Below are positions 2,881 through 61,855 of a stretch of 64,000 nt of DNA, piece by piece. Location: NCBI GenBank assembly GCA_973895155.1, contig OZ316899.1:2873455-2937454 (forward strand), read 5' to 3'. The translations under genes were made by a program, and so were the position numbers. The notes under the pieces are model-generated. The model saw only the letters and a program-made list of their open reading frames with translations. It did not search any database and was not told the DNA's origin. How positions within the stretch are numbered: position 1 is the first letter of the stretch; each line of letters starts with the position of its first letter. This DNA is from Marsupella aquatica. Lineage: Eukaryota > Plantae > Marchantiophyta.

Positions 2881-3212
2881 GTGCCGGTTAAATCTTTTGT
2901 GATACCTCCACATGGATGCTCTTCCTCTATTGGGCCACTAGAGATCAGAGCAGGGGCAACAATGCCACAACTTGTCATCCCTGGACTTCATGGGAAGTCA
3001 GTGGAGAGGCTAGTGGACTTCTTTTTTTGCAAAAGCATGGCATTGGTGCTCCTGAGGTTTCAGCATAGCAACCACAATTGGCATTCTTTGCACCTTTTGT
3101 CAAGGTTACTATTGATAGTTGGGAGCCAACTATTGGCCCCAAGATCACTGGAGGTGAGAGACGACGTGTATGACAATTTCTACCGAGTTATGGAAGTTAG
3201 TTTGCTTTCAAC

Positions 3213-4520: not shown

Positions 4521-4859
4521 ATGTTGATGGATTGAGTTGCAATCCCTGCTCGAGCCAGAGGGATTTGATAGGAGCACGTTGGCATGATGAGGCAGACAAG
4601 GAGATGGTGCCAGGTTGGCATGCTTTTGCGTATTTGTGTTTGTTGCGGAGTGTGGATGGTCTTGGTGCTGTGGCATCATTGGAGAGACCCACTGCAGACT
4701 TTGTAGATCTAGAGATTTCTAGTGAGGAGTCTAGTGGACATGATATTCATGATGATGCAGATGTTGTGATGTATCTATGCACGGGCAGCATGCCGGGTAT
4801 GGTAACTGCCAAAGAGAGAGATCGGATCCTACAATGAGCTAAGCGGTTCAGGTGGGAAG

Positions 4860-6472: not shown

Positions 6473-6473
6473 T

Positions 6474-6489
6474 TGGCGACCATACTGGG
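6474..6489 (+). promoter_or_regulatory. Primer-binding site, probably tRNA-Arg
   Basis: TGGCGACCATACTGGG, one base after the LTR end. Resembles the complement of a plant tRNA-Arg(UCG) 3' end as recalled; not aligned. Confidence 0.65.
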
Positions 6490-6513
6490 GAATCCTTGGG
6501 GCGATTGGATGAG

Positions 6514-9500: not shown

Positions 9501-11379
9501 ATCTAGTCTATACACTGAGCTATGTTGCTCTGTTACTCAGATGGGAATCCCTAGGCTTGTATACTACTCTGTTGTTGCTGCGGCATTGCTTTGTTTTTCT
9601 TTCCGCCCGGGATGGCCTGCCGCCTTTTGGCCTGCTTGGTTCCCCCATCCGTGGGGTTCACGCGGAATAAAAGTTAAAATTTAAGAAAATAAAAAAAAGT
9701 CTTACTTGACAAAAGCAGCTGTCGACAAGTTGGACGAAGGGACGGCGGTGAAAGAGTTCATGGTGCTGGTTGAGAAGGAGTTGAGTTCAATGGTGCGGAC
9801 CATCGTTGAGTCAGCTGAGGGCTGAAATGACTTCGACCAGAAGATGAAAGAGGAGTTCCAAGCGGAGGATGCTGATTGGGTCACGCAGGCTACCTTCTTG
9901 GATTGGATGAATGATAGGAACAAGAAGTTGAAGGGGCCGCAAGAGCTCCTAAGGGAGTTCAAGAGAAGGGTGTCTCAGTTACCGAAGCGGGATGTGGGAT
10001 CATCGAGTTGCAGCGCTCGACGCTCTTCTTGAGGGCAGCCAATGAGGACCTTTGAGAGGAGCTTGAGAACGCAATGGAGCTGTTGGAACCTTCAAGAGTT
10101 ACCTTGTCTAACGATTGGAACCAAGTTGAGAAAGCGGTGTCAAAAGTGAGCAATCGACACCGGCAGCAAGAGCTGGACAAGGAGGCTACCACTCTCAACC
10201 TAAGGCCGTCGGAACCGATATTGAGGAAAGGGAAGCGAGAACCAGCGAAGGATGAGATCAAACCATCGATGGATGATCTTGCGGAAATGATGCAAAACCT
10301 GAAGATCTTGGCGGCACATGCGGTTGAGAATCTGAAACCAAGGGTTGTGAGTGCTCCCGAGAGGAAGCGAGAGATGTAGAGTTGGCCATGCATGTGGTGC
10401 GACAGCAAAGAGCATGATAAATGGGAGTGCCTGGACCTGAGGGAAGCTACGGATAAAGGGCTGATCAAGTTCATCGGTGAAGTTGGTCAGAAAAAGATAT
10501 TGTTTGCCGATACTGAGGAGCCGATTCCATTCAACTCCAACAAGGGAGGCATGAAGGCTTTGGCTGAGAAGTGAGCTGGGAAGCGAGTCGAAGAGGCGTC
10601 CTCTTCGCACCTGGAAGCGAATGTTTACAATGTGGAGTTGGATGGCCCCGTGACGGAAACAGACAAGTTTTACAAGCGCTTGGCGGATCTGGTGCGAGAG
10701 AGATCCGGATGGAGTGACCCGGTGCTGATCAATGCAATAACGGTTGAGGTTGGGGCTAGTTGGGATGCCTCGGTCGAGTCAAAAAGGAAGAAAACCAACA
10801 AGGATGACACTCCGTCTCAATCAGGGGAACGAGAGAGGCGGGATACTCGAGACAAGGAAAGGAGGGTTAGGTTCAAAGATGAGGAAATGAGTGAGAAAGA
10901 GCCGGAAAAAGGGAAACCAATCAGAAAGGACCCGAGATGGGTGCTTTGCAGGGATGTTGACCAGACTATGTACCCGGAGGTTGTAGCTGGAAAGTTCTGG
11001 AGCCAACAGGCTCAAGGGTTTAACAATGCCAAGTTCTTTGGCAGCATGAGGCGGGAGATCCAGGAGGCAATCTTGGAGAGATCCAAGAGGAAACGGATTT
11101 ACAAAGAGGGCCCTCACACGTTGACGGGGAGGGCTGGCGAGACAGAAATAGGGAGTTTCCGAATTTACACTGCTGGGGTGTCCATGGGTTTAGGAAGCAA
11201 AATTGTTGGCCCCAAAGAGTTAGGCTTGGGGATGCCAAAGAGGATCAAGTCCCTTGGAGGGGAGCTCATGGACGATGAGTTCTTTGATGCGGAAGAGGAG
11301 CTCATGGACTTGGACGATGAGTTCTTCGATGCGGAAGAGGAGCTCATGGGAACCGGAAGCAAAGTTGAGTCTGTGGCAA
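6514..11379 (+). pseudogene. Gypsy B gag and downstream region, split by a LINE (6710-9696)
   Basis: QFDGRNVTSYLKSYL joins TKAAVDKL across the LINE TSD. Zinc knuckle CMWCDSKEHDKWEC at ~10390-10430. Stops and frameshifts present. Confidence 0.75.
6710..9696 (+). mobile_element. 5'-truncated L1-type LINE (RT + zf-RVT)
   Basis: 13-bp TSD AAGTCTTACTTGA at 6697-6709 and 9697-9709; A-rich tail at 9666-9696. RT motifs KAPRVDG, WRPLTML, LDFEKAFDRV, FVDD; C-terminal CTLC...ETTPHIFLYC. Confidence 0.95.
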
Positions 11380-14300
11380 TGTCAAACACTTGTCAAGGAG
11401 CTTAAGGGACTTTTCTCCTAAAAAACTACCTACTACCTGCTCCATGTCATGCCAGGGTCACAAAGGATTGACAAAACTTCTGAAATGTGCTTACAATGTC
11501 TAATCACTCTATACATAAGTAGTTTCAACTCTCCACTTCTAGAGAGGTAGTCATCTTGACTACTTTTGCATTCACACCCTTCCCCTCTCCTCTACTCCAA
11601 GGATCAGCAAGGGGGATCTCCACTCCAAGCTGTCATCTTAGAGTAGATTCTCACCCAAACACCCAAGAATCCAAAGTACTTTCCTCTTCAAGCTTAAGTC
11701 TCCTCAAGACCCTTGAAGTAGTGTTACTCCTCAACCTTGCCCCCCCTAGCGTTGGTTTGGGTTCACACATCCCCTTTGAGCTCTAAAGAAGGCTCCTCTA
11801 TCTAAGGACTCTTCCTCTTGTTCTTACTTCTTGTTAACCCAACACACAAGCAAAGTACTTTCCACCCTCAAGCTATAATCCTTTCTAAGTCTCAAAGTAG
11901 TGCCCTACCTTAACCTTGCCTCCTTGGCCTTGGTTTTGTACTAGCACATCTCCTTTGAGCTTAGACCAAGATTACACCATAGCATGGACTCTTCTCTTGC
12001 TCTCATACACTTCAAATGCACTCACACTTAATGGTCACAATGAATATTGATAAGCCTCCTTTTATTGTATCACCTTTACAACAAAAGTTCACTACACATT
12101 CTCCACACTAAGCATGGACCACCTCTCCCTTCTCAAGCTTAGCCCTACCTTGGCAAGGTAGAGATTCCACTTAAGAGATGAGACTCCTGGTCCCTAATAA
12201 ATGAAAACTTCCTCCTTATATACTATTCTCCTTCCACACCACACCAAGCTTGACCTGGAGTCCAACTACTTCTCCCCCAAGTCCTCATAACACACAAAAT
12301 CCAACTCTACAATTCGTAGCCCACCCTACAACCTATTGTTTGGCCTCCTTCCAAGCCCTGGAATATGCCACACATGAGTTGCATGCTTTGACCTCCAAAC
12401 CTGCTCTCACTTATGGTCCTCCTCACTAGCTTCCCAACCCACTTGAAAGCTTGCAAAAAGAGTGAATGAGTCTCAAGTTGTGCCTAGTCAAAGTTGGCCT
12501 TATTTTACTTGTAACCCCTTTACTACCCTAAGTAAACTACCCCTTATACTTAATTTTCTTAACTTGATGGCCTTACACCTTTGACCAAAGGTACATACCC
12601 TTCCCTAGAGCCTAACTAAAGTAGTATGGTGCAAGAAAAGTCAGCCCCTAAATCTGGTAGTCATTCCCCTATGCCGACTTTGGTTTGCAAGCCATCGGGA
12701 CCCCCTTGTGGCCTTGGCTAAAAATATATTTGAGTGATTCTTTTTATGGGTTTCACCAAGGGGTGCCTTACCTTCCCCTAACTCAGCACAAAAAAATTGG
12801 GCCCCAATAGATACCCCTAGCCAAAGTTATGCCCATTCTCCCAAGGCCTATTTTTGGTGTAAAGTGGGTGTAAGCGGCGACCCTATTACACTTACCTTAC
12901 ATGTCCCTTATGGAGATTCCAGGTGTCACCAGGGGAGAGTACTCTCATCATACTCACGTTTCTTATGAAGAATTTGATAAGGACATCAATTTTTGCAGCC
13001 ATTTTCCTCTCTCTTGAACATCAATTTGAAACTGCATCATTCTCTGTTGGATTCGAATGGCAACAGGTCAATCTACAGCTCAACCAGGTTTGCAGCACCC
13101 TTCTCAGTCCACCTCCATAGCCATCCAGCCTTGCAAGTGATTCAAAATCGCAGCAGAATTTTGCAGCAGCCATAGCCCACCAATTCGCAGTTAGCCCTCT
13201 TAATTCCTTCTTTGCAGCTGATCCGTTTGCTACTACATTCAATCAATTTGCTAGCAGCCTAGCTCTATTCTCCAGCAGCCGGCCATAGCTCACCCTTCTC
13301 AACTTTGTAGCTAGCAGGGCAGCAACACTATTGAGCTTGCAGCATACGTACTAATCCGCCAACACTCAACATCTCGTGCTTGAAGCTAGCCCTTCTAACT
13401 CTGGTGCAGCAATAAGTCTGATCAGCTGCCAGCCCTTCAATTTCATAGCTCACCATAGCTCACAGCCAGCCAACTATCTCTTGATCAGCAGCAGCCTATT
13501 TCTCCATAGCAAGCAGCTCTATTCCAATCAGTAGCATCGAGGCAGCCAGCCAATTCTGATCAGCATCCCATGCTTGAAGCTATAGCAGCTCAATTCAATT
13601 TCGTAGCTGCCTCTTGATCCCAATTCAAAGCAAGCATCTCATGTATTGACCCTTATGGTGTTCCTAACCTTGTGCTTGAGTCACCCCGGCCTCGTGCTTA
13701 AGTCGTGGTCGCCGCCAATGCGGTTGACACTTAGAAAAAAATTCGGATTTTTTTGTTGGGAAAACAGTATTTCCAGGCCGTTTTGGACCGCCCCTTAAAA
13801 TCACACATGAGTCCAAAATGACTTCTGACATATTCTCTGGACACAGGCCTATGTCCTGGTTTACTAATATCTAGACAAAACCTTATCACCAATTTTCTAA
13901 AATTAGGTAAAAAGGGTTAATTATTATGTTTTCCAAAATTCTTCTCACCTTTGAGATGCTCCCAAAAAGTAACCAAAGATACCCAGCTTCTACCACAAGT
14001 TCCTAGGCATAGAGTGGACTATATTTAACCCACTTCCAAACTTGGAAATCCTAAATTTACTCATCATCTATTTTTCCCGGGACCCGCTATTTTGTTAATT
14101 TAAGTCACACTGAAACACAAGGAAACCCTAGGTTGAGACCCCACTTGACATCTAACTTTTTAGGGGTGCTCTAGGGACCTCCTAGCATCTATGGGAAAAA
14201 TCTGAACCAAAACTAAGACTTCAAGTGTCGGGTTGTTTCTCCGGCTCGGAATAGTCGCCTATTCTAAATAAGGATGGAACGTTGTATGCCCCATCATAAA

Positions 14301-14493
14301 GACCTTTCTTATCCCTTGTCACTTGCTTACAACTCAGTAACCTTCAATTCCACTATCTTTCCTATTCTACCTACTTAAGTTCCTAAAACCTAGTTACTCC
14401 GATAGCACTTAAAACATCTTTCTTACTATTCCTTGTTCAAAAAGCAAAAAAATGACAAGTTTCTTACATAAACCTATATCATGCCATTCCACA
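11380..14493. mobile_element. 3.1-kb non-coding insertion, probably a solo LTR
   Basis: TG...CA ends flanked by GGCAA/GGAAA. Removing it restores an open host frame ESVANRDPAEGKE...MGSMKG. Contains a degenerate ~170-bp tandem repeat at ~11670-12005. Confidence 0.6.
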
Positions 14494-16690
14494 GGAAAAC
14501 AGGGACCCAGCTGAAGGGAAAGAGCGAGAAGGCATTACTGCGCAATCGAGGACCATTCATGTCATGGGCTCGATGAAAGGAAACGGTTATGCTTACCGAG
14601 ATGGATACTGGGCTCGAGCAAGTCCGGAGAGCGAGTGTCAGTTGGAAGGAATGGAAGGCAAGGTGCGGGCGCTCATTAATACTGGCTCGGAGATCAACTT
14701 GATGGATCCAAAGGTGTTTCAAGACGGAATTGGCCGGTGGATAATGAGTTGCTTTGGAGTGTGAACTCCGTGAGTTCGATGAAGGACTATCTTTGGGGCG
14801 GATGTCCAAATGTGATGGTGAAGTTCGGGAATGTCAAGCAGGCTTGTAACATTTTGGTTCATGAGCACTTGTCGTTTCCGGTGATACTGGGCATGCTGTT
14901 CATCACTGAATGGAGGATGGAGATGAAGGTTCTGGATGATACTACCTTCATGGTGAAGGTTCGAGGCAAAGATGATAAGGAGGTGGTTCAGTTTCCGGCT
15001 GTTCTACCTGGAAATGAGAGGAACCAAAAGTAGCTGCGAGATCCAACAGCAATAGAAGTTGGCATTGCTATGGGGGAGAACCGAGGTGCTAAGATGGATC
15101 TAAGTGCAGATTTCAAAGGGGAGCCAATTGTGGACCGAAAGATGGGGAGTCTAGTGTTCAAGGAAGAGTGTTACTCAGGAGAGCTACTGGACATTGGGAA
15201 GTATTTGAGTGACTTTGGGAAGCGGCTGAAACGGGATGGTGAAGAGTTTGAAGACATTTGAGTGAGTTCTGATAAGTTCATTCTTAGAGAGGGCTACCTT
15301 TGGCGGAAACCTAAGGGCCCCATGCTAGTACCAATGAGAGTTGTCGATTCTAAGGATGAGCAAAAGCTGATTTTGGAGGAAGTCTATGATGCTGAGGCCA
15401 AAGGTGGTTCGAAAGGAATCAGGGCGAAGGTCTGTGAGCAGATCCAAAAGGAGTATTGGTGGCCAGGTTTATACTTGGCCGTTCGAGACTATGTCAAAAC
15501 TTGCAAGGTTTGCCAGTTTTACTCGAGGATCCGACATAGGGATGGATTGGTTCTGACTTACCCCGTGGCTCTACACTTTCAATGGGCTGTTGATGTGGTG
15601 TACATGCCGAGGGAGAGCAATGGGGCGAGATACTTGGTTTTGGCGAGAGAAGACTTGTCTTCTTATGTGGAAGGGAGAGCATTGGTTTCAAACACTACTG
15701 CTGCCATTTGCCAGTTCATACTTGAGGATATCATTGCAAGGCATGGATGCTTTACAAGGATCAGAGCTGATAGGGGGGAGCTCAGCTCCAAGGAAGCATA
15801 AGTTTTTTGACCAATACTGCATCAAACTGAAGCTGACTTTGAGTTACAATCCGGAAGGCAATGGGAAATCTGAAAGGGGGCACATTTAGATTGTGAGCGC
15901 TCTGGCTAAGGCTTGTGATGGGGACTTGGGCAGGTGGTCGAGTCTCCTTCCACTTGCTCTATTAGCGGATCGGATGACTTGTAGCTCAGTGACCGGATAC
16001 GTTCCGGCTGAGCTACTTACTGGGCACTTGCCGATGATGCCACTCGAGGAAGATGTTTGCAGCTGGCGACTGATTGGATGGAAAAATGAAGTTTCAAGAG
16101 AGGAGTTGCTGGTTTGAAGGATCGAACACTTCAACTTGTTACTTGCAAAGATTGAGGTGGCTCGGAAGCAATTGAAGATGGCGAGGTTAAGGAACAAGGG
16201 CAGGTTTGACAGGACTCATCGGTTGAGGCCTGTCTTGGTTAAGGAAGGGGATTGGGTTCTGGTTTACAAAAGTAAGTTGGATGAGCAACACTTGAGCCAA
16301 AACAAGTTTGCTTGGAGGTGGCAAGGTCCGTATGTGATGGTTGCTATTCATGCAAATGCGACCTACACTATTCGGGAGTTGGATGGAACAATTCACCTAG
16401 TACCTTACGCAGGGAAAAGGGTGAAGATCTTCAAGAGGAGGACCAAGAAGGGAATGGACTCAAGTTCCAACTTGAGTGAATTTGAAGACGAGGCACTGGT
16501 CCAGGCGCATCCAATGGACTTGAGTTTCGAAAGTGGCTTGACCGGTTCTGATTCGGATGAGTTGGACTTCAAGTTTCTGGAAAGTGGAGTGCCTAAGGCC
16601 GAGTCTGAAGGCTTTGGGTTTGAGTTTCTTGAGGAGGAAGTGGTCCAGGCGCATGGCTCAAATTCGGACTCAGACTTAGAGGAAATCTGA
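14494..16690 (+). pseudogene. Gypsy B protease directly followed by integrase
   Basis: VRALINTGSEINL (protease), then EYWWPGL...CKVCQ, QWAVDVVYMP, RIRADRGE, YNPEGNGKSERGH and GDWVLVY...WQGPY. No RT or RH motif between 15033 and 15262. Confidence 0.85.
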
Positions 16691-16735
16691 TGGATTGGAG
16701 CAGATTGGAGGCTGCTCAGGTTTACTGGGGGAGAA

Positions 16736-17443
16736 TGTCGTGCCGAAAGATTTTGGCTCAGGAATGGCTTTTATAGGGGATGATGGGCAAAGCCTCCTGG
16801 TTGGGTTGCGTGCATGGTGACTCAGAGGGGCTGCTTGGTTGGATGGATTGAGGTTTGGTGATTGGGTGACTCGTCGTCACCAGGTTTGGTGTTTGGGTGA
16901 GTCACCAGGCTTGGAGTTTGGATGAGCCTCGACTTATTGAGGTTGGCGGTTGTCTATTGAGATCTGTTGAGTTGCGTTCTGTGAGTTCCGCTTCGTTCTA
17001 CGGAACTCGACTGTTGTGCGGCGGTTTTGGAGTTTTGTGCGAGTGTTGGATCCAGGTGTGGAGTTTTGGATCCAGGTGTGGATTTCCCAAGTTTGGAACC
17101 TCGTTGGTCCAGGCCCGAGTTTCGTGTGAGATGTTTTAGACTAGTGGAGTAGTTAGTCAAGCTTTGGTTTTGTGAGCTAAGGAGGAGAGTTTTCCGTCAG
17201 ATTTTGAGTAGATAGTCACTCAAGGAGTTGAGCTTGACAAGTTAGAGGTAGCGGCCCGCTATAGGGCCAACTACTAGACTCTTGCGGGCAAGCTTACTTG
17301 AGGGCACCCATTGTAACCTTTGTGAGAAAAGTTAAAAAAAAAGGAGTGAGAGTTCGCTCCAAAAAGTGTTTGTCGCCTGTCCCAATCGCAGCCAAAAATG
17401 CGCAGTTTTCCCGAGGAGCCCCTAACTTTAAGTCCTCGTGACA
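16736..17443 (+). repeat. 3' LTR of gypsy B
   Basis: Starts TGTCGTGCCG, ends GTCCTCGTGACA, preceded by a polypurine tract. Confidence 0.95.
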
Positions 17444-47800: not shown

Positions 47801-49210
47801 GTTGAGCTTGAGTTAGGATGATAGACTTGGTGAGTTCTAGATCCTGAAGGGTTACTTATCGAGGCGCTTGGTTGCTTGTGCAGACAGTGAGGACCATTGA
47901 GTAGTGGTTGTGTTGGAGAGCAAGTGCGGCTTTGTAGGGGAGGGGCCACTGGTGGTGCAAGGGGCACTAGGTTGCTTGCTCGAGGTATTTTGTGGAGATG
48001 TTCAGGCACCAAGGGCACCTAGGCGTGGGTGCTGGGATTGGTGAGGGCGTTGGGTGGCAAGGTCCACCACTAGATGATCCAAGAGAGGAGTAGATTACTC
48101 AAGGAAGCTCAAGTATAGATTTCTCAGTTGCACGGAGCTTTGTCTACCAAGGCCAAGGAAGCACAGGTAGTGGGAGCCTTGAGGGAGGAGTTGGCTAAGC
48201 AGAAGCACAACTCTGGGGAGATGGAGAAATTGAGGAAACATGTTACGGAGCTACAAAGCCAAGTGGGAATTTTTGAGGCTAGGGCAAAGAGGAGCAATAC
48301 CTTGAGGATGGGGAAGAGGAAGAGCCCCTGCCCACCTAGTCCCACTCTCTCCCCCCACTTGGTTTCCAAGGCTATTGAGATGGTTGTGAAGGAGGTGATG
48401 GAGAAGTACGGGCCTATGTTGGAGGCAACAAGGAAGAGCACAAAGAAGTGTAAGAGTCTAGAGAAGAAGTTGAGGGAGGTCCGTAAGTCATTACGGGAGG
48501 TGCAACAAAGTCACGACGCCACAGGAATGTTGGGGATGCCACCCAAATCCGTGACCCCGGGAACTCCTATGGCCACTAGCCAAGTCATGCCATTGGAATT
48601 ACGGGGTGGTGAGAAGGCGACGTTGTGGAAGGACACCATCAATCAAGGGTACATCAAGGCTTGGCAAGTCTTGGCAACGATGCAGAAGCAGGGAACCTCA
48701 GGCCAAACATCAGGATGGACCACCCTAGAGAAGAAGAGGGGAGGGGGTGCTGCAATCACCCAAGGAGAGTAGTGAGGCAAGCGATGATTCCCGAGGATGG
48801 AGTCCCGACACTGTTAGTGATTCCAATGAGGACTAGTTGGCCGTACGGATGTTAGCCGTAAGGAATTTTATTCTTGACACAACTTTAAAGGGTCAACCCA
48901 CAAGCTGGTTTGAGGGAATTTGTTAAGCTGATTCCAGCAAGGTGCGGCACTCCCCAAACGGAGTCAAGATGGATAAGTTATGAGCCCGGGAGTTTTGGTA
49001 GTTTTACAGATTGAAACCCCCGTAACTCGGCTATTCGGGATTGGTTTTGAGTACCGTTTACGGATCCATGATCAGGAGGAGCAGGGCTGTCCAAGGCTAT
49101 TCTCAAGGGAGTAGTTTGAATGATCTTAGGTTTTGACCATGGTAGGGCTCCCTCACTTTTCACGGACTACGGATTATTGTTGGCACCGTCGAAGGCACCG
49201 TCGGTTCCAT
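44876..49210. mobile_element. Uncharacterised GC-rich repeat or LTR-like segment
   Basis: Begins TGTGACGGGGTCCCC and truncates the RLE element. Contains the 46594-48071 module and ORF-like pieces (46015-46614; coiled-coil-like 48128-48772) with no recognisable domain. Confidence 0.35.
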
Positions 49211-51544
49211 TGTTAGGTTAGAGTTTTAGGGGGCATGTGTGGGGTATCACCACCGTGCCAGGAAACAGGAAAATCCAAACAGGAAACAGCAAAAAGGAAA
49301 TAGGAAAATACTTCAACCAAAACGTCAATAATATATTCCAAAATAACATGTGCAAAGAGAATATTCCATGAATAACCCGGCTAGTCAATGGGTAAAAACT
49401 CTCTAAATTTAAAGCAATGTTCACTTTTAATCATCCAGGGTCCCAAACATAGCGATCGACTCATACGTGAAAACATCATAGCGCCAGGCGCTACCCAAAA
49501 CTAAATACCGTAATGAAACACAACCATGAAACATCATAGCGCCAGGCGCTACCCAAAAATGAAAAAATGTAATGATACCAGTTAACAAAACTCAAGCCAA
49601 AATATTTTTACTAAAGCGAAAACATTGTGTATACACGCTTCTACTAATGAAGCACAATACAAAATTCCAAAATGAGGAGCCTAATGTCCACCTCCAGCGA
49701 TTCAAAATTATTCACCGGATCACATATTGCATGAGCCAAACAAGTATCTCCGGGAGGCCCAAGAGTCTAACCACAATTCTATTCAAAAATTCCGGATCAG
49801 AGAAAGACCCAAATCCGTCGTTGAGCCCTGCGAACTGTAGTCAACCTCACTCTAACAGAGTAATCCACGGTGAAAGAACCCATTCACAAGCCTAACCTAA
49901 CCCCAAAACAAAGCACCAAGTGCACCTCCTCCGATTCCAAACTACAAACCGGATGTGGTTCTCCTCCATGAAATGAGTAGCGCCTGGCGCTACCCAAGAT
50001 CATGACCACGATGATCCTAAGATGATCCCGGATCAAACGGAGACTCACATTCGTCGTTGAGCCCTGCCTTTTTGCGTTTTGGCTTCTGTCAAAAGCCAAA
50101 TGTTTGAGTTGCAAAGTACTGCGCACTTGGAAGCCTTCGCGAAGGGCGCGATGAAGACTCAGGAAGGTTTGTATCATAGAAATTGATACGACCAAGAAAT
50201 TTGGCAGACTGAATTTCCACATCCCAGAAGACATTTGATGAAGGATGTTCGGGAGTTGGATAATGAATTGAGAATCTCTCCTGAAATGGCCTCGGAGGAG
50301 AATCAGGAAGCCAAGGAATGTTCCGTTCACCCGGGCTCATCCCCTCGTCCGCAAGCAGTTGGAGACGATTCCTTATGTCGGAAGTCTCGGTCAGGCGACT
50401 CTCGGTGTCTGCAATCGATGTCGATGACCCAAAGTTGACCGTCTGATCGGTTTGCTCCTCCGACGCTGGCACTTCCCCCAGGGGCCGCACAACGTTATTG
50501 ACATTGAAACCAGGACGCTCCATATCGTCCACCGACGGTTACTTTGATCGGGTTACTCAACGCATGTAGCGCAAGAAACAACCTTCAAGCGCAGAGTATA
50601 CTTTCCAAACCGCAAGAGCATAGTGTGAACAGTTGGAATGAAACTCGTCTGGAGGGATTACTCAAATGTATGCCCCCTCAAAGTATCGCCATTTTTTGAT
50701 TCAACGGACATACGACCAAACCAATGCATGAGAATAGACCGACGGGTAATATGTCCCCAACGGGTGCTAACGTTCATTTATTTATGAACTTAACCGACAA
50801 AACTTCAACGGTAATACTAGTTCCGAAAGGCATATTATTGGCTAACGCCTGGCGCTATCAAAAACAAAGTCATTTCCATATCATTTTTGTTCCTTGAAAA
50901 TTCTGAAAACATGTTATTTGGTTAACGCCAGGCGCTATACAAATACGAGTCACCCAGAGCATGTCCCCAAAAGAATCTGAATTCAAGTTTTGCAATAGTC
51001 TCTGGCATGAAGCTAGGCACTAAAGTGAAATATTGAACTTTCATATTTCTCCAAGCTCACTTGTGAACATAATATACCAATTTGACTACAAATATTTGTT
51101 CATGTCTGAACATTTATATACAATGGAAATGATACAAATGGGGTTCTCACAACTAATCTACTCAGATGACTCTGTCTCACTACTATCGGATCTATTGGTC
51201 GACTCCGCCTCGTCGTCCACAAACTCACTCCGGCACATGTCATCCACAAATTTGTTCACCAAAAACTTCCTATCAGAACCTCTTCTAAGTCCCAGACCTT
51301 TTGTTTCCCAAGATAATGTCCCAGACCTCTCTACTTTTCTGGCGGCTTTCTCAGCATAGGATGGGAGAATAAATGGTTTTTCTGGTGTAATCTCCATAGC
51401 TTCAGCGATTGTTTTCTGGAGTTCAAACCTTCTCCGCGTATTCCACTCCGACCTGAAAGTTTCATCCATATTAAAACAAACACTAAGTTTACCAAAAATA
51501 TGTTGCTGAAAACAGTCGTACATTTGGAGTGAGCTTACGAGCAT

Positions 51545-54500
51545 TACTCAAAAGACTCCTCATCCTCGGAATCACTTTTTGATCCTGAGGGATTTGTTTT
51601 CTCTGCCTCGTCGTCTTCTAGATTGACAACCAGAATCTCTTCTTCATCAGATTCCCAACAACATCTGGCTTGCTCTCTTCGGAATCAAAGTTCAAAATTG
51701 ATCGTACTCTGTCCAACTTCTCTTTCCCTTTCTTTGACAATCTCTTCTCTGGATTCAAAGTTGACTTTGGCTCCAAAAGGTCAGCTAAGGTACACTTTGA
51801 AGCCGTGACAAACTCTATTCGCCCTTCCACCCCAACAACAAATCTACCACAATAGTCTCCCGCCATGAATAAACTTCCTGAGCAACAGGTCCAGTCGATC
51901 ACAATATCCCCTGGATAGGAGATGATCTCTATAACGGACTGCATAAAACCAACTGTGAGCCGCCCGTTTCCACAAGCCATAAGTTCTAGCATTGGATCCG
52001 ACTTTAAAGACGGAAGTCCGATCAGATTTGTAATTGAAGGATCTTTGGAAGGCGACAATGGACGGAACTTGGGATCTTTCGGTATTGTTGATTTTCTCAA
52101 AACCCGACCGAATATATCCAACCGCAGCGTGAAGATCTACAAAAATATAGAATAATAAGGTCATGAAACAAAAAGACGTAGATTAGCGCCTGGCACTGGC
52201 CAAAATGAAAGATATACAAGATTAGCGCCTGGCGCTGGCCAAAATGAATGATACAAGGTTAGCGCCTGGCGCTGGCCAAAATGAATGACATTAATTACCT
52301 GAGTGTCAGACTTAGGTTTGTACATAGGAAACCCCATGACAACTGTATACGATGCAATACAGTCAAACTTTTGCGACTGCTGGCATGCAGATATCACTTC
52401 CAAAATCTGGTCATATTCTCCAGTGTGAAGAATAGCCATAAGTCCGTCGTCCGAGAGGAAAGGGTCCATTGCGCTAAAGAAAGCCCCAGGGAGAGAGTGG
52501 TCTTGCACATTCCATTTCGGGACTTTCTTGTCCAAAAGTGATGGCCTCAATCCGGTAGGCAAATATAGAAATCCTACATCGACACCAAATGTCCTAACTT
52601 TTCCACCTCTAATAACCCCCTTTGACCAAGAACCCGACTTCACAAGATTCTTTCCCCAGGTCTCTACCTGAGAAACCCAAGATGGCTTCTCTTCCCTTTG
52701 AAACACACTATCGTAGAACTCTGCCAAGGTAGACTCCACGAACGTGTGCCTTGTTTTATTTCCCTTGAAGTCCCCCACATTCCTCTGTAAACCAGTTGCC
52801 GCAAGCGTTTCCTTGTGAGACCCACCGGAAGTAGAAACACGACGTTTCTTCTTCTTCCTAGTGCTCGTGGCGTCCACTGGCGGAGCACTCACATCCTCCG
52901 GGGTCTCCGACCCCTGTGGTGGATCCTCATCCTTCCCAAGACTGTTGTCACGAGAAGGCTCTGGAGTTGCAGTCAAAGCATTACCCGACACCAACCCCGC
53001 ATTTGATTTCCGAGATCCTGCTAGAGAAATTGTTACATTAATAACAGTGCCTGGCGCTAGCCAAATAGAAGACTGAAAATTATGAAGATTTGAAGCTGCA
53101 AAATTAGGAACTCACTTATTTTGGTCTCTTTTTGAGATCCACTTGGGGTTGTTTCTTGCTTGGGTTTTGCTCTTGGTTTTTGACTCCTTGCAACTTGGAC
53201 GACTTGCGTCTCACAAATCCGCTAGAGCTCTATCGCCGAGAGATCAATCTCGGCATCAATTCCCTGCTTCATCTCTGACAAAATGTTTCTGGGCTCCAAA
53301 TTCTTTGATAACTTGTGAAAAGCATCTTTCTGTGTCTCATCAAACGGTGAATTCCACTTGTCTGTGTCAAGATACCACGGACAATGCACAACCTCCCACT
53401 TTGCCATTTTCCTTGGGGGAAACTTTCCCTCCGGTGGGTACATGGTGTACCCAAGAAAGTCTCCAGACACTTCGGACCTCATATTCACAACGGCCCATTT
53501 CTGGAAGGCACCAGGATAAGCCCAGAAATAGCTCGGGTCACTCCTCTCCATTTTCACATAGTATCGATACAAATATCTCTTGGCTCTCTTGCGGTTCACT
53601 TCACTCAAATCCTCCTTGTCAGCGTACTTGGACTCCCAAATAGTGTTGGAAAACTTGGCCCTTACGGAATCCCCATACTTTCTAAAATCATCTACAATCA
53701 AAGCCTTCAACTTCTCAAAGGGAATCAGTTCTCCACCGAGTGTTGTAAGACGTTGTTCGGTGCATGAACCCATAGCCTCCTTCAAACATGCCTCGAGGAG
53801 AGCAGTTGCTATCCCTCAATCATTTTCCAAACATGCCAGGTGTGGCACCACTGCTTCACGGGGTCGTCCGATACTCCGAGCGGATGGAAAAACTGTTTCC
53901 TTAACTCGGGAGTACAATGTGCAACAAGCAATGTACTTCGCAATTTTGGATCTAATGCCGAATTGGCAGTGAACAAGCGAGCTCTATCCATGGTGCAAAA
54001 TACAACTTCAAGGACCTTTTCACGTTTTAGTCGATCTGTAAGACAATACATCTCAGCGCAAGTGTCCATGAAATCTTCAAACTCTGGGCTCAACAAGGAA
54101 GTGAGCTTCGGAGTTTTCACGGTCCACTCCTTAGTGGCTTCCTTCATCATCTGACTGTGACGAAGATTTGTCTCTTCGATCGACCATGGAGCGCCGGAAC
54201 TGCTCGCCTGGTTCTTCATCACCTGAAATTGCTGCGAGTACAATTTGATCTTGTTTTCACACAAGATGTATACCAACGCCTCCATCGGCATCTTCTTGGT
54301 AAACCATGAACCCTTTCGGGTTCCTTTCCTGGTCTTCTCAAATTTTGCATAATTTGCCTCATCAATTATGGGTTTGTAGTACTCGAGATCATGAGCCAAA
54401 ATCCTCCTGATTCTGTCCGCATCCAAAATCCAAGAAGACTCTACCACTGCCTGTCCCGTCCTGTGAAATTGAGGACATTAGAAATAGCGCCTGGCGCTAA

Positions 54501-55340
54501 CCTAACAATACAATCTAAAAAAGGGAGAAATTGTTGAAGGGAAACAATCAAATTTGGGAAGAGTAGTCGGTGGTGAAAGAAAACTCACTAGTTAACAATA
54601 TGCATCGCTGCCTCAATCTCGATGATTGATGCCTTCTCTCCTTTGAAAATTGTGCATTGCATGCAAGGATGATACTTAGGATTCTCTGGACTCTCGTTTG
54701 TGACTTGAGTCCACGAAAACAACCGATGATTTCCATCAAAAACATAGAACATTTTGTCCTTGAGGACGTGGAAAGCGGGGTCTGATTCACATTCCGCTTC
54801 GAACAACTCGTTCTCCATGATCCAAAGAGGATCCCAAGTACCGCAAATTTCATCTGTACAAATCTGCGGATTACCTTCAGCGTTGGATGGTTGAACGAAA
54901 AAGCGCATGCCAATGGACGAATTGTATCCAGATGTCCGGAATGAGTCCTTCAGCTTCTCAATCGATTGACTATTCCTCTGAAGAGTGCGCACAACCTCCA
55001 TGTGAACGAGACGACATAAAGGAATTCTTGGAGGCTCCTTTGGTAACCCATTTGCATCAACTCCAAACGATATCACGTGCTTTTCAATGACATCGACCAC
55101 CAATTTCTCAATGTCATCGACATTCTGAACGGCAAACTCACCAACATGTTCCATTTTCAATCGCCTCGGTTTTGGACAAGGAAGCTCAACTTGACTGAGA
55201 GGATACTGCACTGTGGAACGAGTTACTCTTTGACTTGAAACACAACTGGAATACGATGACTCTGAGGACTGGGAATGGTTTGGCGACCCAGATCCCATTT
55301 TGATATACTCTCTCAACTGCGATGCAGAGATTTTTCCCAT
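51545..55340 (-). pseudogene. ParB-like domain + beta-class amino (N6-adenine/N4-cytosine) DNA methyltransferase-like gene, 4 exons, disrupted
   Basis: ParB-like FYVFDGNHRLFSW (~54720). Motif IV-position GVDVGFLYLPTGL (52549-52587). Motif I region FMQSVIEIISYPGDIVIDWTCCSGSLFMAGDYCGRFVVGVE (~51830-51950). GT-AG introns 54461-54588, 53018-53115 and 52137-52298 join the frames. Lesions: TAG at the exon 1/2 junction, frameshift ~53815, TAG at 53222, frameshift ~51650. Confidence 0.75.
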
Positions 55341-56399
55341 TCAATTTTGTTTCGTACGGGAGTTTGTTTGGGAGTTCGTACGCTTAATCGTGCGGATTAC
55401 ACGCATCCCTCAACGACACCAACGCAAATGAGAAGAATCTGCCTCAGTAGGAACAATTCCAAAGGAAGCAAAGTACCCTAAATGTACGACGACTGGACTT
55501 CTGGCAACATGTGAGTCGGGGGATGTTGGACACCTGGAGCAAAATGCACCGTTGATTAAATCTGGGACTGACCAGTAGACCTCACAGTTCGTAAAGAGGT
55601 ATCCGTTTAAGTTACCGTTGACCTGCTACTTCCATAAATATTATACTCGAATTGACTAAAATGTCCGTTGAAGTTATCGTTGAAGAGCGAGTCATTATTA
55701 GATAGCGCCCGGCGCTATCATTGGTGTCCGTTGTGAAGGTTCCTTGAATCTATCGTGAACATCATATTCATTCAAGAAATTGTAATTTAGCATATAAGTT
55801 TTTACTAGCGCCAGGCGCTAGTAAAAACTGACAATCTAGAACCTTCAAAACTTGACTCAAAGTTTTGTTAGCGCCTGGCGCTATCATAGGGAGATGTCAT
55901 TCTTGTCTCTTTATCCTCTCATATATAACATGGAAGATAATATTCCTTCGAGAACAGAACATTTCTTTTTGAATAGTTTACTAGCGCCGGGCGCTATTAA
56001 ACATTAACCTGATAACCGTTAAAGTTACCGTTTGATTATTGAGTACACCTTTGATAGCGCCTGGCGCTAGCTTTGGGAGTTACCATTACGGACCAGATAT
56101 GCATGATACATATTTGCTAGCGCCTGGCGCTATCAAAGGTGTACTCGATACAATCGTGTCATCTGAGATGATTCTTGTCAAACCATCCATCACTATGTGC
56201 ATATGGAGCCTGAAGTTTTCATCTCACTTACTTAGCGCCAGGCGCTATTATTTGTGAGCCTTGCAATTTATGTTCAAATTTTGATCAATAAGCTTTTATT
56301 GGTAGCAGCTGACATGTGTAATTCCGTTAGAAAACGACAAGCATTCATTGCTAATAGGTCACTTTGTCGTATTCGTAACGGTTTTATTCAGCACAAATG

Positions 56400-59300
56400 A
56401 ATTTAGGTGGCCTCACATTTATGTACGCCATTTCCAATGGATTCACAAATTGTAATTTCTCGCTGTTCGCCTGGCAACCTCGTGGCAATCCTGCTTGCCG
56501 CTCCTAAGAAAAATGATGAAATTTCTGAGGAATATCTTGCCACCAGGTTTGGAATTCCTAGGGAAAGCATACAGCGAATAGTTATCTCGGGAGAGGAAGT
56601 GGTGGTTGATGTTTATTTCATTGAAGGAGTTTGGTATTGGAGGTTGTGCGGTGGGGTGAAGTATGACATCGTTAGGTTGGGAAAATTTGAGGTACCATCC
56701 TCCTCAAAGGGGAAGCTGAAAGTCGATTGAATTGACCATTCAAATAGTAGCGATGATGAAGATTTGGCGAAGCTTCGTCTTCCTCAGAACAACGTCAAAG
56801 TGGAGACGGTCCATGGGCGGACGACTGATTCAGTTGTGTACCGGAGGAGTGCTCTTGATGCGATTCTTCGATCAAAAGGCCAGAGTGAGATCTCAAGATT
56901 CATGCGAAGGAATGATTACCGATTTGAGCAAGTATCAAGCTTGCCTGGCACGTACAATGGGAATATTGTTTTTGAACTGCCTCCAGTTGTTGGAGTCTGC
57001 TCAAAAGGTGAACGCCTCTGGGACATGGATCGGGGCAAGGACTGCTACTATTGGACTCGGATTGTCACGACTTCTGCAAATGTTCTCCCAAAAAAGGTGT
57101 GGGATTTTGGGAAAGTCTTTTGCACGGGTTCTCTGGAATGTCGTAACAATTCATGCCAGTTCTGGGCAGAACATAAAAGGAGGAATGCAAAGTTCTGGGC
57201 AAGAGTTCCTAAGATTTCTGGACCGCATGTAGTCGGGCAACTCATTCCTGAGGGTGGGATTGTCTGTCACTATTGTTGGGAGTGCCCATTTTGTGTTGAG
57301 CTCTGTCCAGCAATGATGGTCTACATGTACGCGTCTTCCAAAGTTGATGCCAAGTCTGCTAAGCAAATGTCGCGGCTTGCCATTCACATCGGACATCATA
57401 ACCATCCGAGCAAGCAAGTTTTTTCAAGAGAGGCAGAGAAAGTTGCAAAGATGCACATGGAACAAGGTTTGACTTTGAATCCGAGTGCAACTACGGCGGG
57501 TATGAAGAACACCGTCACCGGGTCTCTTTTTAAAGCAATGTATGAGTTGTCAGTTCAAGACATGATCCCAATAGAAGAGACCAAGATTTTTGAATCTCTT
57601 CAAGTCATCTCAACGCCTCAGAAATTTGTGAACCTTCTGAGGAGTATCTGTCAAGACCAGAAAGGAAGAGGTGAATTGGAATTTTTGGTAAGCATGTAGA
57701 AGAACATTTCATTCCCATTTCTGCAAAGGTTCTTGTTGCCGGGACAAGGGTCTCGAGATGAGAGTGCACACATTTTCAAGATGTCCACTAAGGGTGAAGG
57801 CTATGGTCTGGATCTTCTTCGAAAGATGAGTCCCGGAGGGCCTCTTGAGGGTTTGTGGGTAAGTTTTGATGTGATGCACCGAATGACAAAGGATTGGCTT
57901 ACATTTAGTGTACATGTTTATGACCATAACTATCGTGCACTTTGCATGATATTCACTTGCAAGTTGCGAGCAGAAGATACAAAATCCCTTGAGAGGGCTT
58001 GGCGTTTAATGTTGGAGGTGGCTGATGAGAACGGTCTTCACAATGTCCACATTCATGGTTTTATGGCGGACAATGCTCAAGCTGGTTGGAATGCTGTGAG
58101 GAATGTGTTCTTTGGGGGACTTCCTGATCCCGAACGTGAGCGATCAGATGCATTTCACTTCTTTCAGTCATTTTGGAGACACTCAATTGAAGGCATTCCT
58201 GAGGGAAAGTAGAGTGAACATCGTGCCCTATGGGATAGGTTGCGGAATGCAAAGTCATTTATCGAGGCATATCGTATTTCTAGAGAAATTGATTCTTGGT
58301 GGAGGGCAGGGAATTGTTATCCTGGTAAATTACGAATGTTGCAAGGTTGGATTTCATGGTGGGTTGTCCAATGGCGCCAATGGGGAAACTTTATTCGATT
58401 GGTAAGTATTCTAAACAATCGTTGGTCAGCGCCTGGCGCTACTCATACATGTTCAAAGTGATTACATATGCTATTGTTTCTATGTGTTCATTGGCTAGCG
58501 CCTGGCGCTACTCATACAGGTTCAAAGTGATTATATCTGCTATTATTTCTATATGTTCATTGGCTAGCGCCTGGCGCTATTCAAGTCCTAAATCTAACCT
58601 TGTCGATGAATTTTGCAGAGCAAGAGTGCAGAAGAAGCGGCAATGATTCCAAATTGTGGTGGATCCGAGTCGTCTCACGCGTCAATGATTGTCTGGCAAA
58701 CGAAGAAGAAAGTTGGAGTCTTTGAAGGGTGTGAAACCGACCAGAATAGAGCGATCTCTCAAATTGCAGCCTATACGACTTACAAGAGAGGATTGAATAG
58801 AGGGAATGGTCCAACTGTGTTTGAGTTGGCTTTCCGCTCTGCAGATCTAGCGGGTTCCCCGCGGTTGTTTGAAGAAGCTTCGAACCTTTTCCTTTCCAAT
58901 GCGGCTGAATTTGATTTGGAAAGGAATTCCCCTTTGAATGGGGATGTACATACCCGGTCAGTAAAGAGGAAGGGACATGCTACTGGAAATGTCTCTGCGC
59001 AGGACTCCCATAGGCATGACACTATCCTCATTACGACCCCAAACACCCGAGGTTTGAAGAGAAGAAATCTCAATAGAACAAAATTCTCTGCGATTCCTTC
59101 TGAACCAGGTCCCCAAGAGAGTGTAGTCGTCAATATTTCAGAGAGCGATGCCTCAGCTAGTCTTGAAGAGTGGACACCTCCTCCTCCGATGGAGATGAGG
59201 TCATCTGCAACTCCAGTCACGCCCCCAGTACATGTTATTGAAGAAGTAACCCCGTCCGTGTTGGAGTCCAATGTTCCTTCTGGAGCATGGCATATTAGGA

Positions 59301-60117
59301 GAACTTGCTGGCCCAGTGTGCAATGGATCCCTTGGCGGACATGGAGATCATGACGAATGTAGAAATCGATTGAAGAAAGTAGGCTACCGGACGTCAAACG
59401 GAGTCGTTGGTATCGTAGTTTGAGCAGCGCAAATTTTCAGAGGGGAACCACATCCAGAACTGATCTGGTTCTGTCCGAATAATGTTTGTTACAGAAGTCA
59501 TCTTCGAAAAGGTGTGGTGAATGTTCCGCCTCCTTGTGATCACTTGCCCGTTGCATTGACTACAAATCTTTCTACTGCGGAGGTAGAGTTTCTGAAGGAC
59601 AATAGAATATCGATCGGAGGTGAAGGTGATCGTGTAAGAAATGCACCAAGTGGACTAGATCTTCGAATCGATGTCAATGTTTTCCCGGAAAGGATGAATC
59701 TACTTCAGTCGACAATTTGTTGTTTATCTCAAAACGGGAGGATGTGCCTACAGAGAGTGCATCTAACTAAATCGCACTATAAGAAGATTGAGGCAGTTGA
59801 GAAAGAAGAAATGAAAATAATTTGTTCTAGGGATGTTGCGACAGGAAATGGATGGGGCAAACAATTTTGCATCCAAACACACATTGGTCACCACTGTCAT
59901 TGCCTATTGGGTTCATATTTGCTGCTTCCCGTGCTGTTCTTGCGAAGATTTCTATTGTCGTCATGCCCACCGCAAACCCTTCTTGCCTTGCAAACATCTG
60001 TATTGGATTTATAAGAATGTTTTCAAACTGGACCTTCGAGAATCAACGTTGTCGAGTCAGCCTATACTCACCGTTGGAGAAATACGTCTCTTGTTGGAAC
60101 GACAAAGTTTAGGGTAG
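56400..60117 (+). pseudogene. Mutator-like DDE transposase with GCM-like Zn domain and SWIM finger, disrupted
   Basis: N-terminal CTGSLECRNNSC...CHYC..CPFC..CPA...HIGHHNHP. Catalytic candidates WVSFDVMH (~57865), GFMADNAQA (58069), DAFH (58147, at the CxxH position) and GSESSH (58667). In-phase intron 58402-58618. SWIM CSCEDF...CKH (59932-59997). Stops at 57697 and 58210. Confidence 0.8.
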
Positions 60118-61855
60118 TATTTAAAGAGGTGTCTATTATGTAGTTAACGTTCCAATGGTCAGTACTTTGTCATTTTCCAACGGCATTATCATATACAGAA
60201 GCTTATTGAGAATGAGTGTATTAGACAATGTTTGGTTTTGTAAAATAGGGTTGAGTCATTGATAGCGCCTGGCGCTAGTATTATTTACATATTTTGCTCA
60301 AAATCTGCCTTTTGAGGTTAGGGAGGTGCCCCGTTTGTTTTTAAATTGGTTTTGAACGTTTTTAAATGGTTCGAGAGACTTGGCACTCCACTTTTCATGG
60401 GATTTTTTGAATGTTTTTTTATTGGTGTTGCTCACAACAGTACGAAGGATGACAATTCCTTGAATGTTTTTCCTTATGTGAGTAAAAACATTGCTGATAA
60501 CAGTAAAACTCTCCTGATATGAGGAAAGTTTTTGCTCGTATCAGTAAAAAATCTCCTGTTTCCTAGCACGGTGTAAAGCCTCCATGTGTGTGCCGCATGC
60601 TTTAGGTTAGGGATTCCTTGAGTAGGGTTTTAGCGGCACCGCTAGGGTAACCGCCATTGTTGTGGCCCCGTGAGGGGTGTTTTGGTGTGTTTTTTCAGTA
60701 CTTAGGAAGGAGCCCCGTAGTGAATAGGGGGGAACTCAGTCTAGTGTTGATGAAACGTTAGCTCGTAGCGTAGAGAAAGAAGTAATCCAGAGTAGTGAGG
60801 TGAGAAGTAGTCATTGTCCTAGTAAGGCAGGAGACCGGGTTACTCATGCAATGTATTACTTATTAACCAAAAGATATGGATTGAGCTTGACTCTCCACAG
60901 TTCGTTATGTGTTATGATTTCGGTGCTTTCATAGTTGTGTTCTTCCTGTAGCCATTTTGGTGGGTTTTCGTGAGAGGACCCACCAAGTGAATTCTTGAAA
61001 GAAGTTTACAAGGTCTGGTCGGCCTTATGAGCCAAAGGAGTGGTGACAGCACTCCACTAGAGACCAAGAGGAAAGTGCAGTCCATGTGACTTGATCAAAA
61101 ATAGTGAAGGGTGAGAAAGTTGGCAGACTTGATCAAAAAATGCAATCTGGGAGCGAGAATGAATATACTCATTCCTAGTGTGATGAAGTCTAAACAACGT
61201 CCTTCCACGTCCCCTGATACGATTAAAACGGTATCTGTTGTGAAGAAGTGGAAATATAGGTAGTTACCATTTGATAAACAAACAACATAAGTGTGGTCTT
61301 GTTTTTGGCGCCGCTGCTTGGGAAACCTTCTTCTTCTTTTTTGGATTGCAAAAGGAGGGGAGCTACATCTATTTGGATTTCAGGCATATCAACCACAATG
61401 CAACTTGCGACGGTTGATACGTGAGAAGTTCTTTGGTTACTCTGTTATTGTACATCAACCACAATGCAACTTGCAACGGTTGATGTTTGAGAAGATTTTT
61501 TGGTGATATTTTTGTGTGAGCTTGGCATGCAGGTCTCAATGGGATGCCGAGGGGGAGAGGAAGTCCCCAACACATACGTATGCCAAGATCAGAGCTAGAC
61601 CAAGTGCCCTCTTGGATTGGTACTAGATGAAGAGTAGTTGCCAAAGAACGATTACAACTTTCTAAGGAGGGGAGGTTGCCACTAGAGTTGGAAGGACATC
61701 ATGGAATACAACAAGAAGCAGCTCAACATAACGAAGTCATACATCTAGACAAAGAAACGGAAGCAGACCAAGCGCTAGAGCGGAGGGAGCTCTTTGGGGT
61801 ATTGCAACGTGAGCTTCTATAGAGTCCAAGTCCAAAGCACATTGCAATACTACCA

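Follow-up and report, generated by a model that had tools for sequence, protein, structure and literature searches.

What does a large plant DNA transposon gain from a gene that resembles a ParB-guided DNA methyltransferase? This question is raised by a stretch of 64,000 nucleotides from Marsupella aquatica (contig OZ316899.1, assembly GCA_973895155.1; "the window" in the following, with coordinates given as window positions unless another locus is named), for which an earlier note had described an element with terminal inverted repeats (TIRs) that pairs a Mutator-like transposase head-to-head with a ParB-DNA amino-methyltransferase gene and had proposed that such a system could write its own N6-methyladenine (6mA) or N4-methylcytosine (4mC) mark. 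The best overall explanation of the locus, and one that we moderately favour, is that of an inactivated autonomous-type Mutator-like element (MULE) with three co-inherited parts, a transposase, a divergent accessory gene and a set of palindromes, in which the accessory protein would recognise the palindromes of its own element. This explanation builds on structural and family claims that are held with high confidence, whilst a self-written methyl mark appears doubtful.

In order to establish the limits of the element, its ends were compared with those of related elements from the liverwort Riccia sorocarpa. An inverted-repeat search returned TIR arms at 49251–49270 and 60554–60573 that match at 19 of 20 positions, in agreement with the 20-bp TIRs of the earlier note, which had taken these arms as the limits of the element (49251–60573). 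No duplication is present in the bases immediately outside the arms; 9 bp beyond each arm, CATGTGTG is found on the left (49234–49241) and on the right (60583–60590), and represents 8 of the 9 positions of a 9-bp target site duplication (TSD). In the Riccia elements L001, L002 and L003, the left end begins GGGGG... and the right end finishes ...GGTCTC, with the better-matched inner repeat lying within, and each is bounded by a TSD: CATGCAACA for L001 (element 1081–17074; perfect, 9/9), GAAGAAATG for L002 (9/9) and GTGAAATTT(A) for L003 (9–10 bp). Since the window element exhibits the same asymmetry of its ends (left end GGGTATCAC; right end, as reverse complement, GAGGCTTTA), its true span is 49242–60582 with a 9-bp TSD, and the limits and TSD placement of the earlier note lie 9 bp too far in. 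The left terminus (49242–49270, plus strand) consists of the nine poorly matched bases GGGTATCAC followed by the 20-bp TIR core CACCGTGCCAGGAAACAGGA, with the GGG/GAG asymmetry common to Riccia, and the right terminus (60554–60582, minus strand) of the TIR core and nine terminal bases (GAGGCTTTA CACCGTGCTAGGAAACAGGA as reverse complement). A 21-bp subterminal tandem repeat of 2.3 copies is found at 49259–49307. A 9-bp TSD is the hallmark of the Mutator superfamily, and a length of 9–11 bp was used here as the criterion for membership.

The plus-strand gene is collinear with the transposase of Riccia over ~56815–60117, with all exon blocks retrieved by tblastn at 33–59% identity. Its first exon (56437–58212) encodes a zinc-finger-rich N-terminal part and a MULE-like core (57733–58212), the extreme N-termini of the window and Riccia proteins not being alignable; this is followed by a middle exon (58613–59353), recognised by tblastn to the Riccia transposase, and by a last exon (59514–60117) with a SWIM-type CxC...CxH motif (59935–59997). 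In a protein-language-model atlas search the core was grouped with MULE clusters at a score of 0.95, with 176 features in common, and its ten best family-assigned matches all fall in one family or clan. The D...E...D spacing, judged by eye, agrees with the MULE pattern, and a C-S-C-x15-C-K-H motif is kept at the C-terminus in both window and Riccia. On the TSD, the termini, the atlas features and these motifs the element is accepted as Mutator-like, which upholds the superfamily assignment of the earlier note; an intact transposase with such a zinc-finger N-part, MULE-like DDE core and SWIM-type finger would be expected to perform cut-and-paste transposition with generation of 9-bp TSDs.

On the minus strand, the accessory gene is collinear with Riccia proteins over ~55340–51161. 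The two genes lie head-to-head and are separated by ~1.1 kb (55340 to 56437) holding seven palindromes, matching the divergent pair around a ~1-kb region that had been noticed before. Introns were deduced from changes of frame, from Riccia gene models and from the gaps that separate the homology blocks and are filled with palindromes; exons are given as homology blocks only, since enumeration of GT/GC-AG joints left too many frame-compatible options.

Is this gene pair a property of the family or an accident of one copy? Host gene fragments are often captured by MULEs, and the earlier note had recognised that a one-off (Pack-MULE-like) capture of the methyltransferase-like gene, or its arrival as a nested separate element, would undo its interpretation. 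The 64-kb window contains the element only once, which would fit a single capture. In four of the six Riccia loci fetched, however, a transposase homologue lies head-to-head with the accessory gene, ~2–2.5 kb upstream, in elements with TSD-bounded ends, and the gene is not enclosed by internal TIRs or an internal TSD, as a nested insertion would be. The accessory gene is also evolving under constraint: comparison of Riccia subfamilies gave a pN of 0.26–0.35 against a pS of ~0.8 (synonymous sites saturated) in all three regions of the protein, and the accessory protein is under purifying selection. Contigs of the window lineage, from four runs of two organisms, evenly cover 49800–55450 at word depths of hundreds to thousands and hence the accessory gene is as repeated as the subterminal DNA, a high and even depth in two organisms that a one-off capture does not explain. 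Capture and nested insertion, rejected on the findings from Riccia, are thus extremely improbable: the two-gene layout is a family trait of non-seed plants. The family comprises ~50 Riccia gene models, and in ferns (Adiantum) the ParB-like and methyltransferase-like regions recur at the protein level. One Riccia element, L002 (~6577–16251; ~9.7 kb, TSD-bounded), keeps the accessory gene and palindromes with no transposase homologue and is a non-autonomous derivative retaining the accessory gene.

A full HMMER scan with the 250-aa first open reading frame (ORF) of the accessory gene returned 217 relatives; those of the long ones that were looked up come from Riccia sorocarpa and Adiantum ferns and are annotated as hypothetical. 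P0153, a Riccia protein of 1207 aa, aligns collinearly to the minus strand of the window in four blocks: a ParB-like block (55040–54591), two blocks of the middle region (54471–53815 and 53695–53282) and a methyltransferase-like block (52586–51747). A putative last exon encoding an acidic tail (51161–51544, minus strand) gave a weak tblastn match to the Riccia terminal exon (E = 0.003). The middle region (53222–54471, minus strand) is helical and belongs to no recognised family; it displayed low recognition in the atlas, with helical-bundle look-alikes only, and a profile search of the PDB returned nothing meaningful for it. UniRef automatically names many of the Riccia accessory proteins (P0153, P0163, P0175–P0177 and others) 'Trimethylguanosine synthase', and one Riccia gene model of the family 'Profilin' or 'Plant heme peroxidase'; these odd names look like annotation artefacts or chimeric gene models.

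The N-terminal domain of the accessory protein is encoded by an exon at 54591–55340 (minus strand), whose assignment comes from the predicted fold and from a DGNHR motif at 54723–54737. An AF2 model computed from 36 homologues reached a predicted local distance difference test (pLDDT) score of 84 overall and >90 for residues 80–250. In a Foldseek comparison the top 43 PDB matches of this model were all ParB, Noc, KorB, Srx, SbnI or SerK structures, at E-values of 0.06–1; the second aligner, VIA, gave a middling score (Z = 7.2 over 97 residues, rmsd 2.8 Å). Within the WDGNHRL motif, a candidate for the arginine-containing phosphate-binding motif of the superfamily (GxxR or DGxHR type), G203, N204, H205 and R206 are nearly invariant in the 36 homologues. 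These scores are modest but one-sided, and on the model the N-domain is assigned to the ParB/Srx fold. As a separate observation, the closest feature-space neighbours of the ParB-like ORF (54588–55340) in the protein atlas are clusters of fungal DUF3723, a family of accessory genes carried by the Starship giant transposons (bioRxiv 10.1101/2021.12.13.472469). The ORF has no match to DUF3723 in Pfam, and a recurrence of ParB-like accessory proteins on unrelated eukaryotic mobile elements is only a lead.

The C-terminal region is encoded by a linker plus methyltransferase-like N-half (52302–52994, minus strand) and a C-half (51621–52121, minus strand), the latter recognised from sub-threshold Pfam, from alignment and from a family profile against the PDB. 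Structure prediction for the Riccia domain gave a model with a mean pLDDT of 59 and a core of 70–90, and in Foldseek the top 44 PDB matches of this model, with a best E of 2.7e-9, belong without exception to the beta-class N6A/N4C DNA methyltransferases, with rotifer N4CMT among the structural matches; the order of strands and helices agrees with the permuted Rossmann fold of the beta class. The family profile retrieved DpnA/M1.HpyAVI (1.2e-4) and CcrM (3e-3) from the PDB. In case of Pfam, the match of the window to N6_N4_Mtase (PF01555) extends over model positions 169–219 of 221 (E = 7e-4) at 20 bits, where the gathering score is 26.7, and the Riccia proteins scanned reached 23.7–26.2 bits over positions 165–219 only, the motif I end of the model; a precomputed database Pfam column gives PF01555 for a few Riccia gene models, weakly so for P0164. 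A word-indexed protein search with the 167-aa methyltransferase piece found no match. As judged from the model, the assignment to the beta-class N6A/N4C methyltransferase fold stands, and the combination of ParB and DNA amino-methyltransferase put forward in the earlier note is borne out at the level of the fold.

Whether the domain still methylates DNA is a matter of its motifs. Motif I, which binds S-adenosylmethionine (AdoMet), reads GDIVIDFAGGWGAT in 14 of 31 Riccia proteins, with close variants in the remainder; in the window it reads GDIVIDWTCCSGS (~51870–51911), with the first glycine replaced by cysteine. Canonical motif IV, which follows strand beta-4, is (D/S/N)PP(Y/F/W). At this position 30 of 33 Riccia proteins exhibit D[LMI]P[TS], the others DMSS, DMPI and DLSS, and the canonical form is found in none of the 33. 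The window exhibits YLPT (52554–52565), and because the same YLPT is carried by P0205, an independent intact ORF from another sample, this is the state of the lineage and not a private mutation. The HPTQKP-like motif is also lost: the Riccia proteins have RRKC(T/V)G in its place, and the window has GRLTVG. In one fern protein motif IV reads DVPF, which points to an ancestor closer to the canonical form.

These findings bear directly on the proposal that the gene product is an active amino-methyltransferase which, targeted to the palindromes by its ParB part, writes 6mA or 4mC for self-recognition, silencing evasion or control of transposition. Relatives that lack the aromatic residue of motif IV, such as METTL14 (EPPL), are not known to be active, and neither this residue nor the PP pair is present in the Riccia paralogues or in the two copies of the window lineage; together with the replaced HPTQKP-like motif in Riccia and window, the cysteine in motif I of the window and a Pfam match that covers only the last 50 model positions below the gathering score, this speaks against activity. 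On the other side, the domain truly has the fold of the beta-class DNA N6A/N4C methyltransferases, Riccia has preserved motif I well (GDIVIDFAGGWGAT), no other part of the protein is as conserved between Riccia subfamilies as the methyltransferase-like region (pN 0.26–0.29) and the DVPF of the fern protein retains the aspartate and an aromatic residue; furthermore, phage fusions of ParB with N6_N4 methyltransferases are common (PMC12704722), and 4mC is used by liverworts, via a different enzyme (bioRxiv 10.1101/2021.02.12.428880). Because motif IV is never canonical (D/S/N)PP(Y/F) in Riccia or in the window lineage, a self-written 6mA or 4mC mark, as proposed in the earlier note, is doubtful: to judge by these motifs, catalytic DNA methylation in the window lineage is improbable, and the same low probability is given to the proposal as a whole. 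The low pN compared to saturated pS between the Riccia subfamilies indicates that the domain has been maintained, although probably not as a standard amino-methyltransferase, and in the window lineage it would more likely serve as an AdoMet- or DNA-binding module.

The third part of the element is the palindrome TAGCGCC-W-GGCGCTA. A search with the pattern AGCGCCNGGCGCT, allowing at most one mismatch, returned 21 copies that all lie within 49480–60276, and none in the other 52.7 kb of the window, exactly the distribution described in the earlier note; the chance expectation from dinucleotide-preserving shuffles is 0.06 matches on average. All 21 copies are located outside the homology-defined exons (7 intergenic, 8 intronic, 6 subterminal or 3' of the genes). 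Five are found in the left subterminal DNA 3' of the accessory gene (49480, 49538, 49979, 50844 and 50924; 49480–50936), three within a 37-bp tandem repeat (52185–52273) in the intron that splits the methyltransferase-like domain, seven as an array in the shared intergenic region (55704–56246), which presumably acts as a promoter, three within a 69-bp tandem repeat in a transposase intron (58428–58578) and one in the right subterminal DNA (60264–60276). Four of the copies are imperfect with one transition each, three of these four changes being at CpG. Each lineage exhibits its own palindrome: those of the Riccia lineages are likewise odd-centred (CGGCGAG-N-CTCGCCG, CGGCGGA-N-TCCGCCG or CAGCGGA-N-TCCGCTG), and L001 contains 13 copies of a palindrome differing from that of the window, 10 of them intergenic, with an array at 8386–9371 of that locus. 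It is a trait of the family that 10–20 copies of a GC-rich, odd-centred palindrome, specific to the lineage, are present in the shared promoter, introns and subterminal DNA. Two further observations concern the sites themselves. Neighbouring intergenic palindromes recur ~63 bp apart (63 and 63 in the window; 63 and 64 in L001), other spacings being ~103–144 bp, which suggests composite repeat units or a phasing constraint. The centre of the window palindrome is CCWGG, a plant CHG context and the classic Dcm/EcoRII site; this centre is not conserved, the Riccia palindromes having others.

How could the three parts act together? In the explanation that we favour, the product of the divergent accessory gene, with its ParB/Srx N-domain bearing DGNHR, its helical middle and a C-terminal methyltransferase-like domain that keeps motif I, would serve as a VANC-like self-recognition module that recognises the palindromes of its own element in the manner of ParB on parS and of VANC on its motif arrays, and this recognition would regulate the chromatin state, expression or transposition of the element. 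Binding is inferred because ParB binds palindromic, multi-copy parS sites, because VANC binds motif arrays of its own element (PMC5735166) and because a red-algal ParB-domain accessory gene adjoins inverted-repeat arrays (bioRxiv 10.1101/2025.02.11.637652). Taken by itself, the binding of the palindromes by the accessory protein is placed at, or just short of, an even balance. A more specific version by analogy to ParB, in which the accessory protein would load as a nucleoside triphosphate-dependent clamp at parS-like palindromes and spread from there, whilst the methyltransferase-like domain senses AdoMet or deposits a mark, the whole arrangement being ancient in land-plant MULEs, appears unlikely; were it true, each lineage would distinguish its own copies from other DNA, and protein and palindrome would co-evolve.

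The palindromes may also be read as binding sites of the transposase, or as structural or regulatory repeats of the promoter, with the accessory protein acting elsewhere (on chromatin, in anti-silencing or on RNA). In TIR elements the transposase commonly binds repeated motifs in subterminal or internal DNA, as for TnpA of En/Spm and for Ac, and some of the palindromes here are subterminal at both ends; the transposase N-part is rich in zinc fingers, and no helix-turn-helix (HTH) was found in the accessory protein. The majority of the palindromes, however, are intergenic or intronic and do not lie beside the TIRs, and palindromic, multi-copy, lineage-specific sites are the classic pattern of ParB and parS. 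L002, moreover, has palindromes and an accessory gene with no transposase homologue, and the link between a ParB accessory gene and inverted repeats has been noted independently on red-algal transposons of other superfamilies (bioRxiv 10.1101/2025.02.11.637652). An action on RNA could be read from the UniRef name 'Trimethylguanosine synthase' of some Riccia homologues, that of an RNA methyltransferase, but the structural matches are to DNA and not to RNA methyltransferases. This alternative is accordingly considered rather unlikely.

Several points weigh against palindrome recognition by an accessory protein of a MULE. The palindromes could equally be transposase-binding sites, which computation cannot separate from sites of the accessory protein; the middle region of the latter has no recognisable HTH. 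The ParB assignment depends on a fold with modest scores plus one motif: Pfam ParB_N (PF02195) has no match among the pieces of the accessory gene, and a sequence-profile search of the PDB with the ParB alignment returned nothing meaningful. In case of the transposase, Pfam recovered neither MULE nor SWIM in the ORF pieces of the window; the Riccia copies matched PF21056 (RNaseH-like, MULE clan) weakly (E = 0.05–0.19; this family alone, at E = 0.19, for the intact 584-codon exon) and SWIM at E = 0.09, below the cut-off, whilst NCBIfam gave no match for the Riccia transposase and a PDB sequence-profile search with the core nothing meaningful. Of the models that the earlier note had named for a check, MULE, SWIM and ParB remained below threshold in Pfam, so that these assignments are based on fold and features, and N6_N4_Mtase was sub-threshold. 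No splice joints were found in the contigs from the four runs of two organisms, which behave as DNA, so that these lend no support from expression or splicing. Finally, the apparent co-variation of palindrome and protein lineage was noted in a handful of loci only.

The window copy itself is inactivated, with both genes broken, as the earlier note had concluded of this copy. The transposase carries an in-frame TGA at 56728–56730 and an in-frame TAG at 57697–57699, where Riccia has glutamine in an uninterrupted 584-codon exon, and a frameshift around 59890–59905, just upstream of the SWIM motif, through which Riccia reads. In the accessory gene, the middle exon is split by the loss, at 53812, of a single base that many family contigs have, and the related contig L007 is uninterrupted at this point. 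Transitions found only in the window and not in the family contigs (49800–55450) are many and mostly C>T or G>A, an excess expected from 5-methylcytosine deamination in a silenced, methylated copy. One such private difference, at 55339, creates the ATG that opens the ORF 54588–55340, and the real start codon of the family therefore lies elsewhere.

A number of side observations concern the surroundings and the remaining DNA of the element. The element is inserted within another repeat (flanks 48300–49241 and 60591–61200), with the short words TTAGGTTAG, GGCACCG and CCATTGTT recurring on both sides of the insertion; an empty-site paralogue was not found within the 64-kb window. Upstream, a coding-looking stretch ends near 48770 and is followed by non-coding DNA. 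CATG opens the TSDs of the window element (CATGTGTG) and of L001 (CATGCAACA, 1072–1080 of that locus), and not those of L002 and L003; this common start may be due to chance or to a target preference. The left subterminal DNA also contains a 147-aa ORF (50089–50532, minus strand) that family contigs cover at high depth and that has no match in the Riccia loci.

Self-recognition and counter-silencing by transposons are understood in molecular detail for very few families, with VANC of the VANDAL elements as the main case. The family described here would provide a second, independent and apparently much older example from land plants, assembled from ParB and DNA-methyltransferase folds of prokaryotic type, and as its candidate binding sites differ between lineages, protein-DNA co-evolution is directly testable. 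A PF01555-like domain on a transposon is no evidence for eukaryotic 6mA or 4mC unless motif IV has been checked. For annotation, the ~50 Riccia gene models are transposon genes, some of them automatically named 'Trimethylguanosine synthase'. Full-text literature searches retrieved no account of land-plant MULEs with a fused ParB/methyltransferase-like gene as their constant companion, and none of a degenerate motif IV in such a fused gene. Fusions of ParB with N6_N4 methyltransferases are typical of phages, and red-algal transposons were known to carry ParB and PF01555 genes separately.

Among the known systems, maize MuDR (mudrA, mudrB) is likewise a two-gene autonomous Mutator element with 9-bp TSDs. 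The genes of MuDR are convergent and driven from TIRs of ~200 bp, whereas those of the present family diverge from a central region between TIRs of ~29 bp, and the second gene is unrelated. With Marchantia MpDN4MT1 and rotifer N4CMT the accessory protein shares a eukaryotic beta-class amino-methyltransferase fold; these two keep TSPPY/SPPY, and DNA methylation has been shown for them (bioRxiv 10.1101/2021.02.12.428880, PMC8885841), but they are host genes and not transposon cargo and contain no ParB domain. A relation to Marchantia DN4MT1 was set aside on account of its TSPPY motif. Closer in domain composition are the fusions of ParB with N6_N4 DNA methyltransferases from phages and prophages, at ParB-Tls loci (PMC12704722, PMC4738411); they too are borne by mobile elements and join these two folds in an identical N-to-C order. 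These bacterial and phage fusions have canonical DPPY/SPPY and no long helical insert, whereas the gene described here is eukaryotic with introns, its ParB part is too diverged for Pfam and its motif IV is non-canonical.

The nearest precedent is found in red algae, where a preprint describes a ParB-domain accessory gene of Plavaka elements that is accompanied by arrays of inverted repeats and proposes self-binding and self-modification, with homologues of the accessory genes PAG1-3 on Zisupton and on Chondrus Mutator elements (bioRxiv 10.1101/2025.02.11.637652). Next to VANC, PAG3 serves as a precedent for a self-binding accessory protein. As here, DNA transposons carry a PF01555-type methylase-like gene, a ParB-like gene and inverted-repeat arrays. 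In the red-algal cassette, as published, methylase plus SET and ParB plus 2-oxoglutarate (2OG) oxygenase form separate proteins, whereas in the land-plant family, with a liverwort, ferns and Marsupella as its hosts, ParB and the methylase-like domain are fused, and Pfam detected neither SET nor 2OG domains in the ORFs of the window or in full-length Riccia proteins. In case of the Arabidopsis VANDAL MULEs, VANC binds family-specific motifs that are tandemly repeated in the promoters and introns of its element and that co-evolve with the protein (PMC5735166). VANC has neither a ParB nor a methyltransferase fold, and no sequence relation to the accessory protein was found; its motifs are 8–9 bp, non-palindromic and in one orientation, compared to palindromic sites of 15–21 bp here, and VANDALs have no long TIRs. 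Binding and hypomethylation by VANC have been shown experimentally, whilst binding in the present family is a prediction. Both systems nonetheless combine a transposase and an accessory protein on an element of the Mutator superfamily (PMC5735166), and in both a short family-specific motif has accumulated, partly in tandem, in the non-coding parts of the element and differs between lineages.

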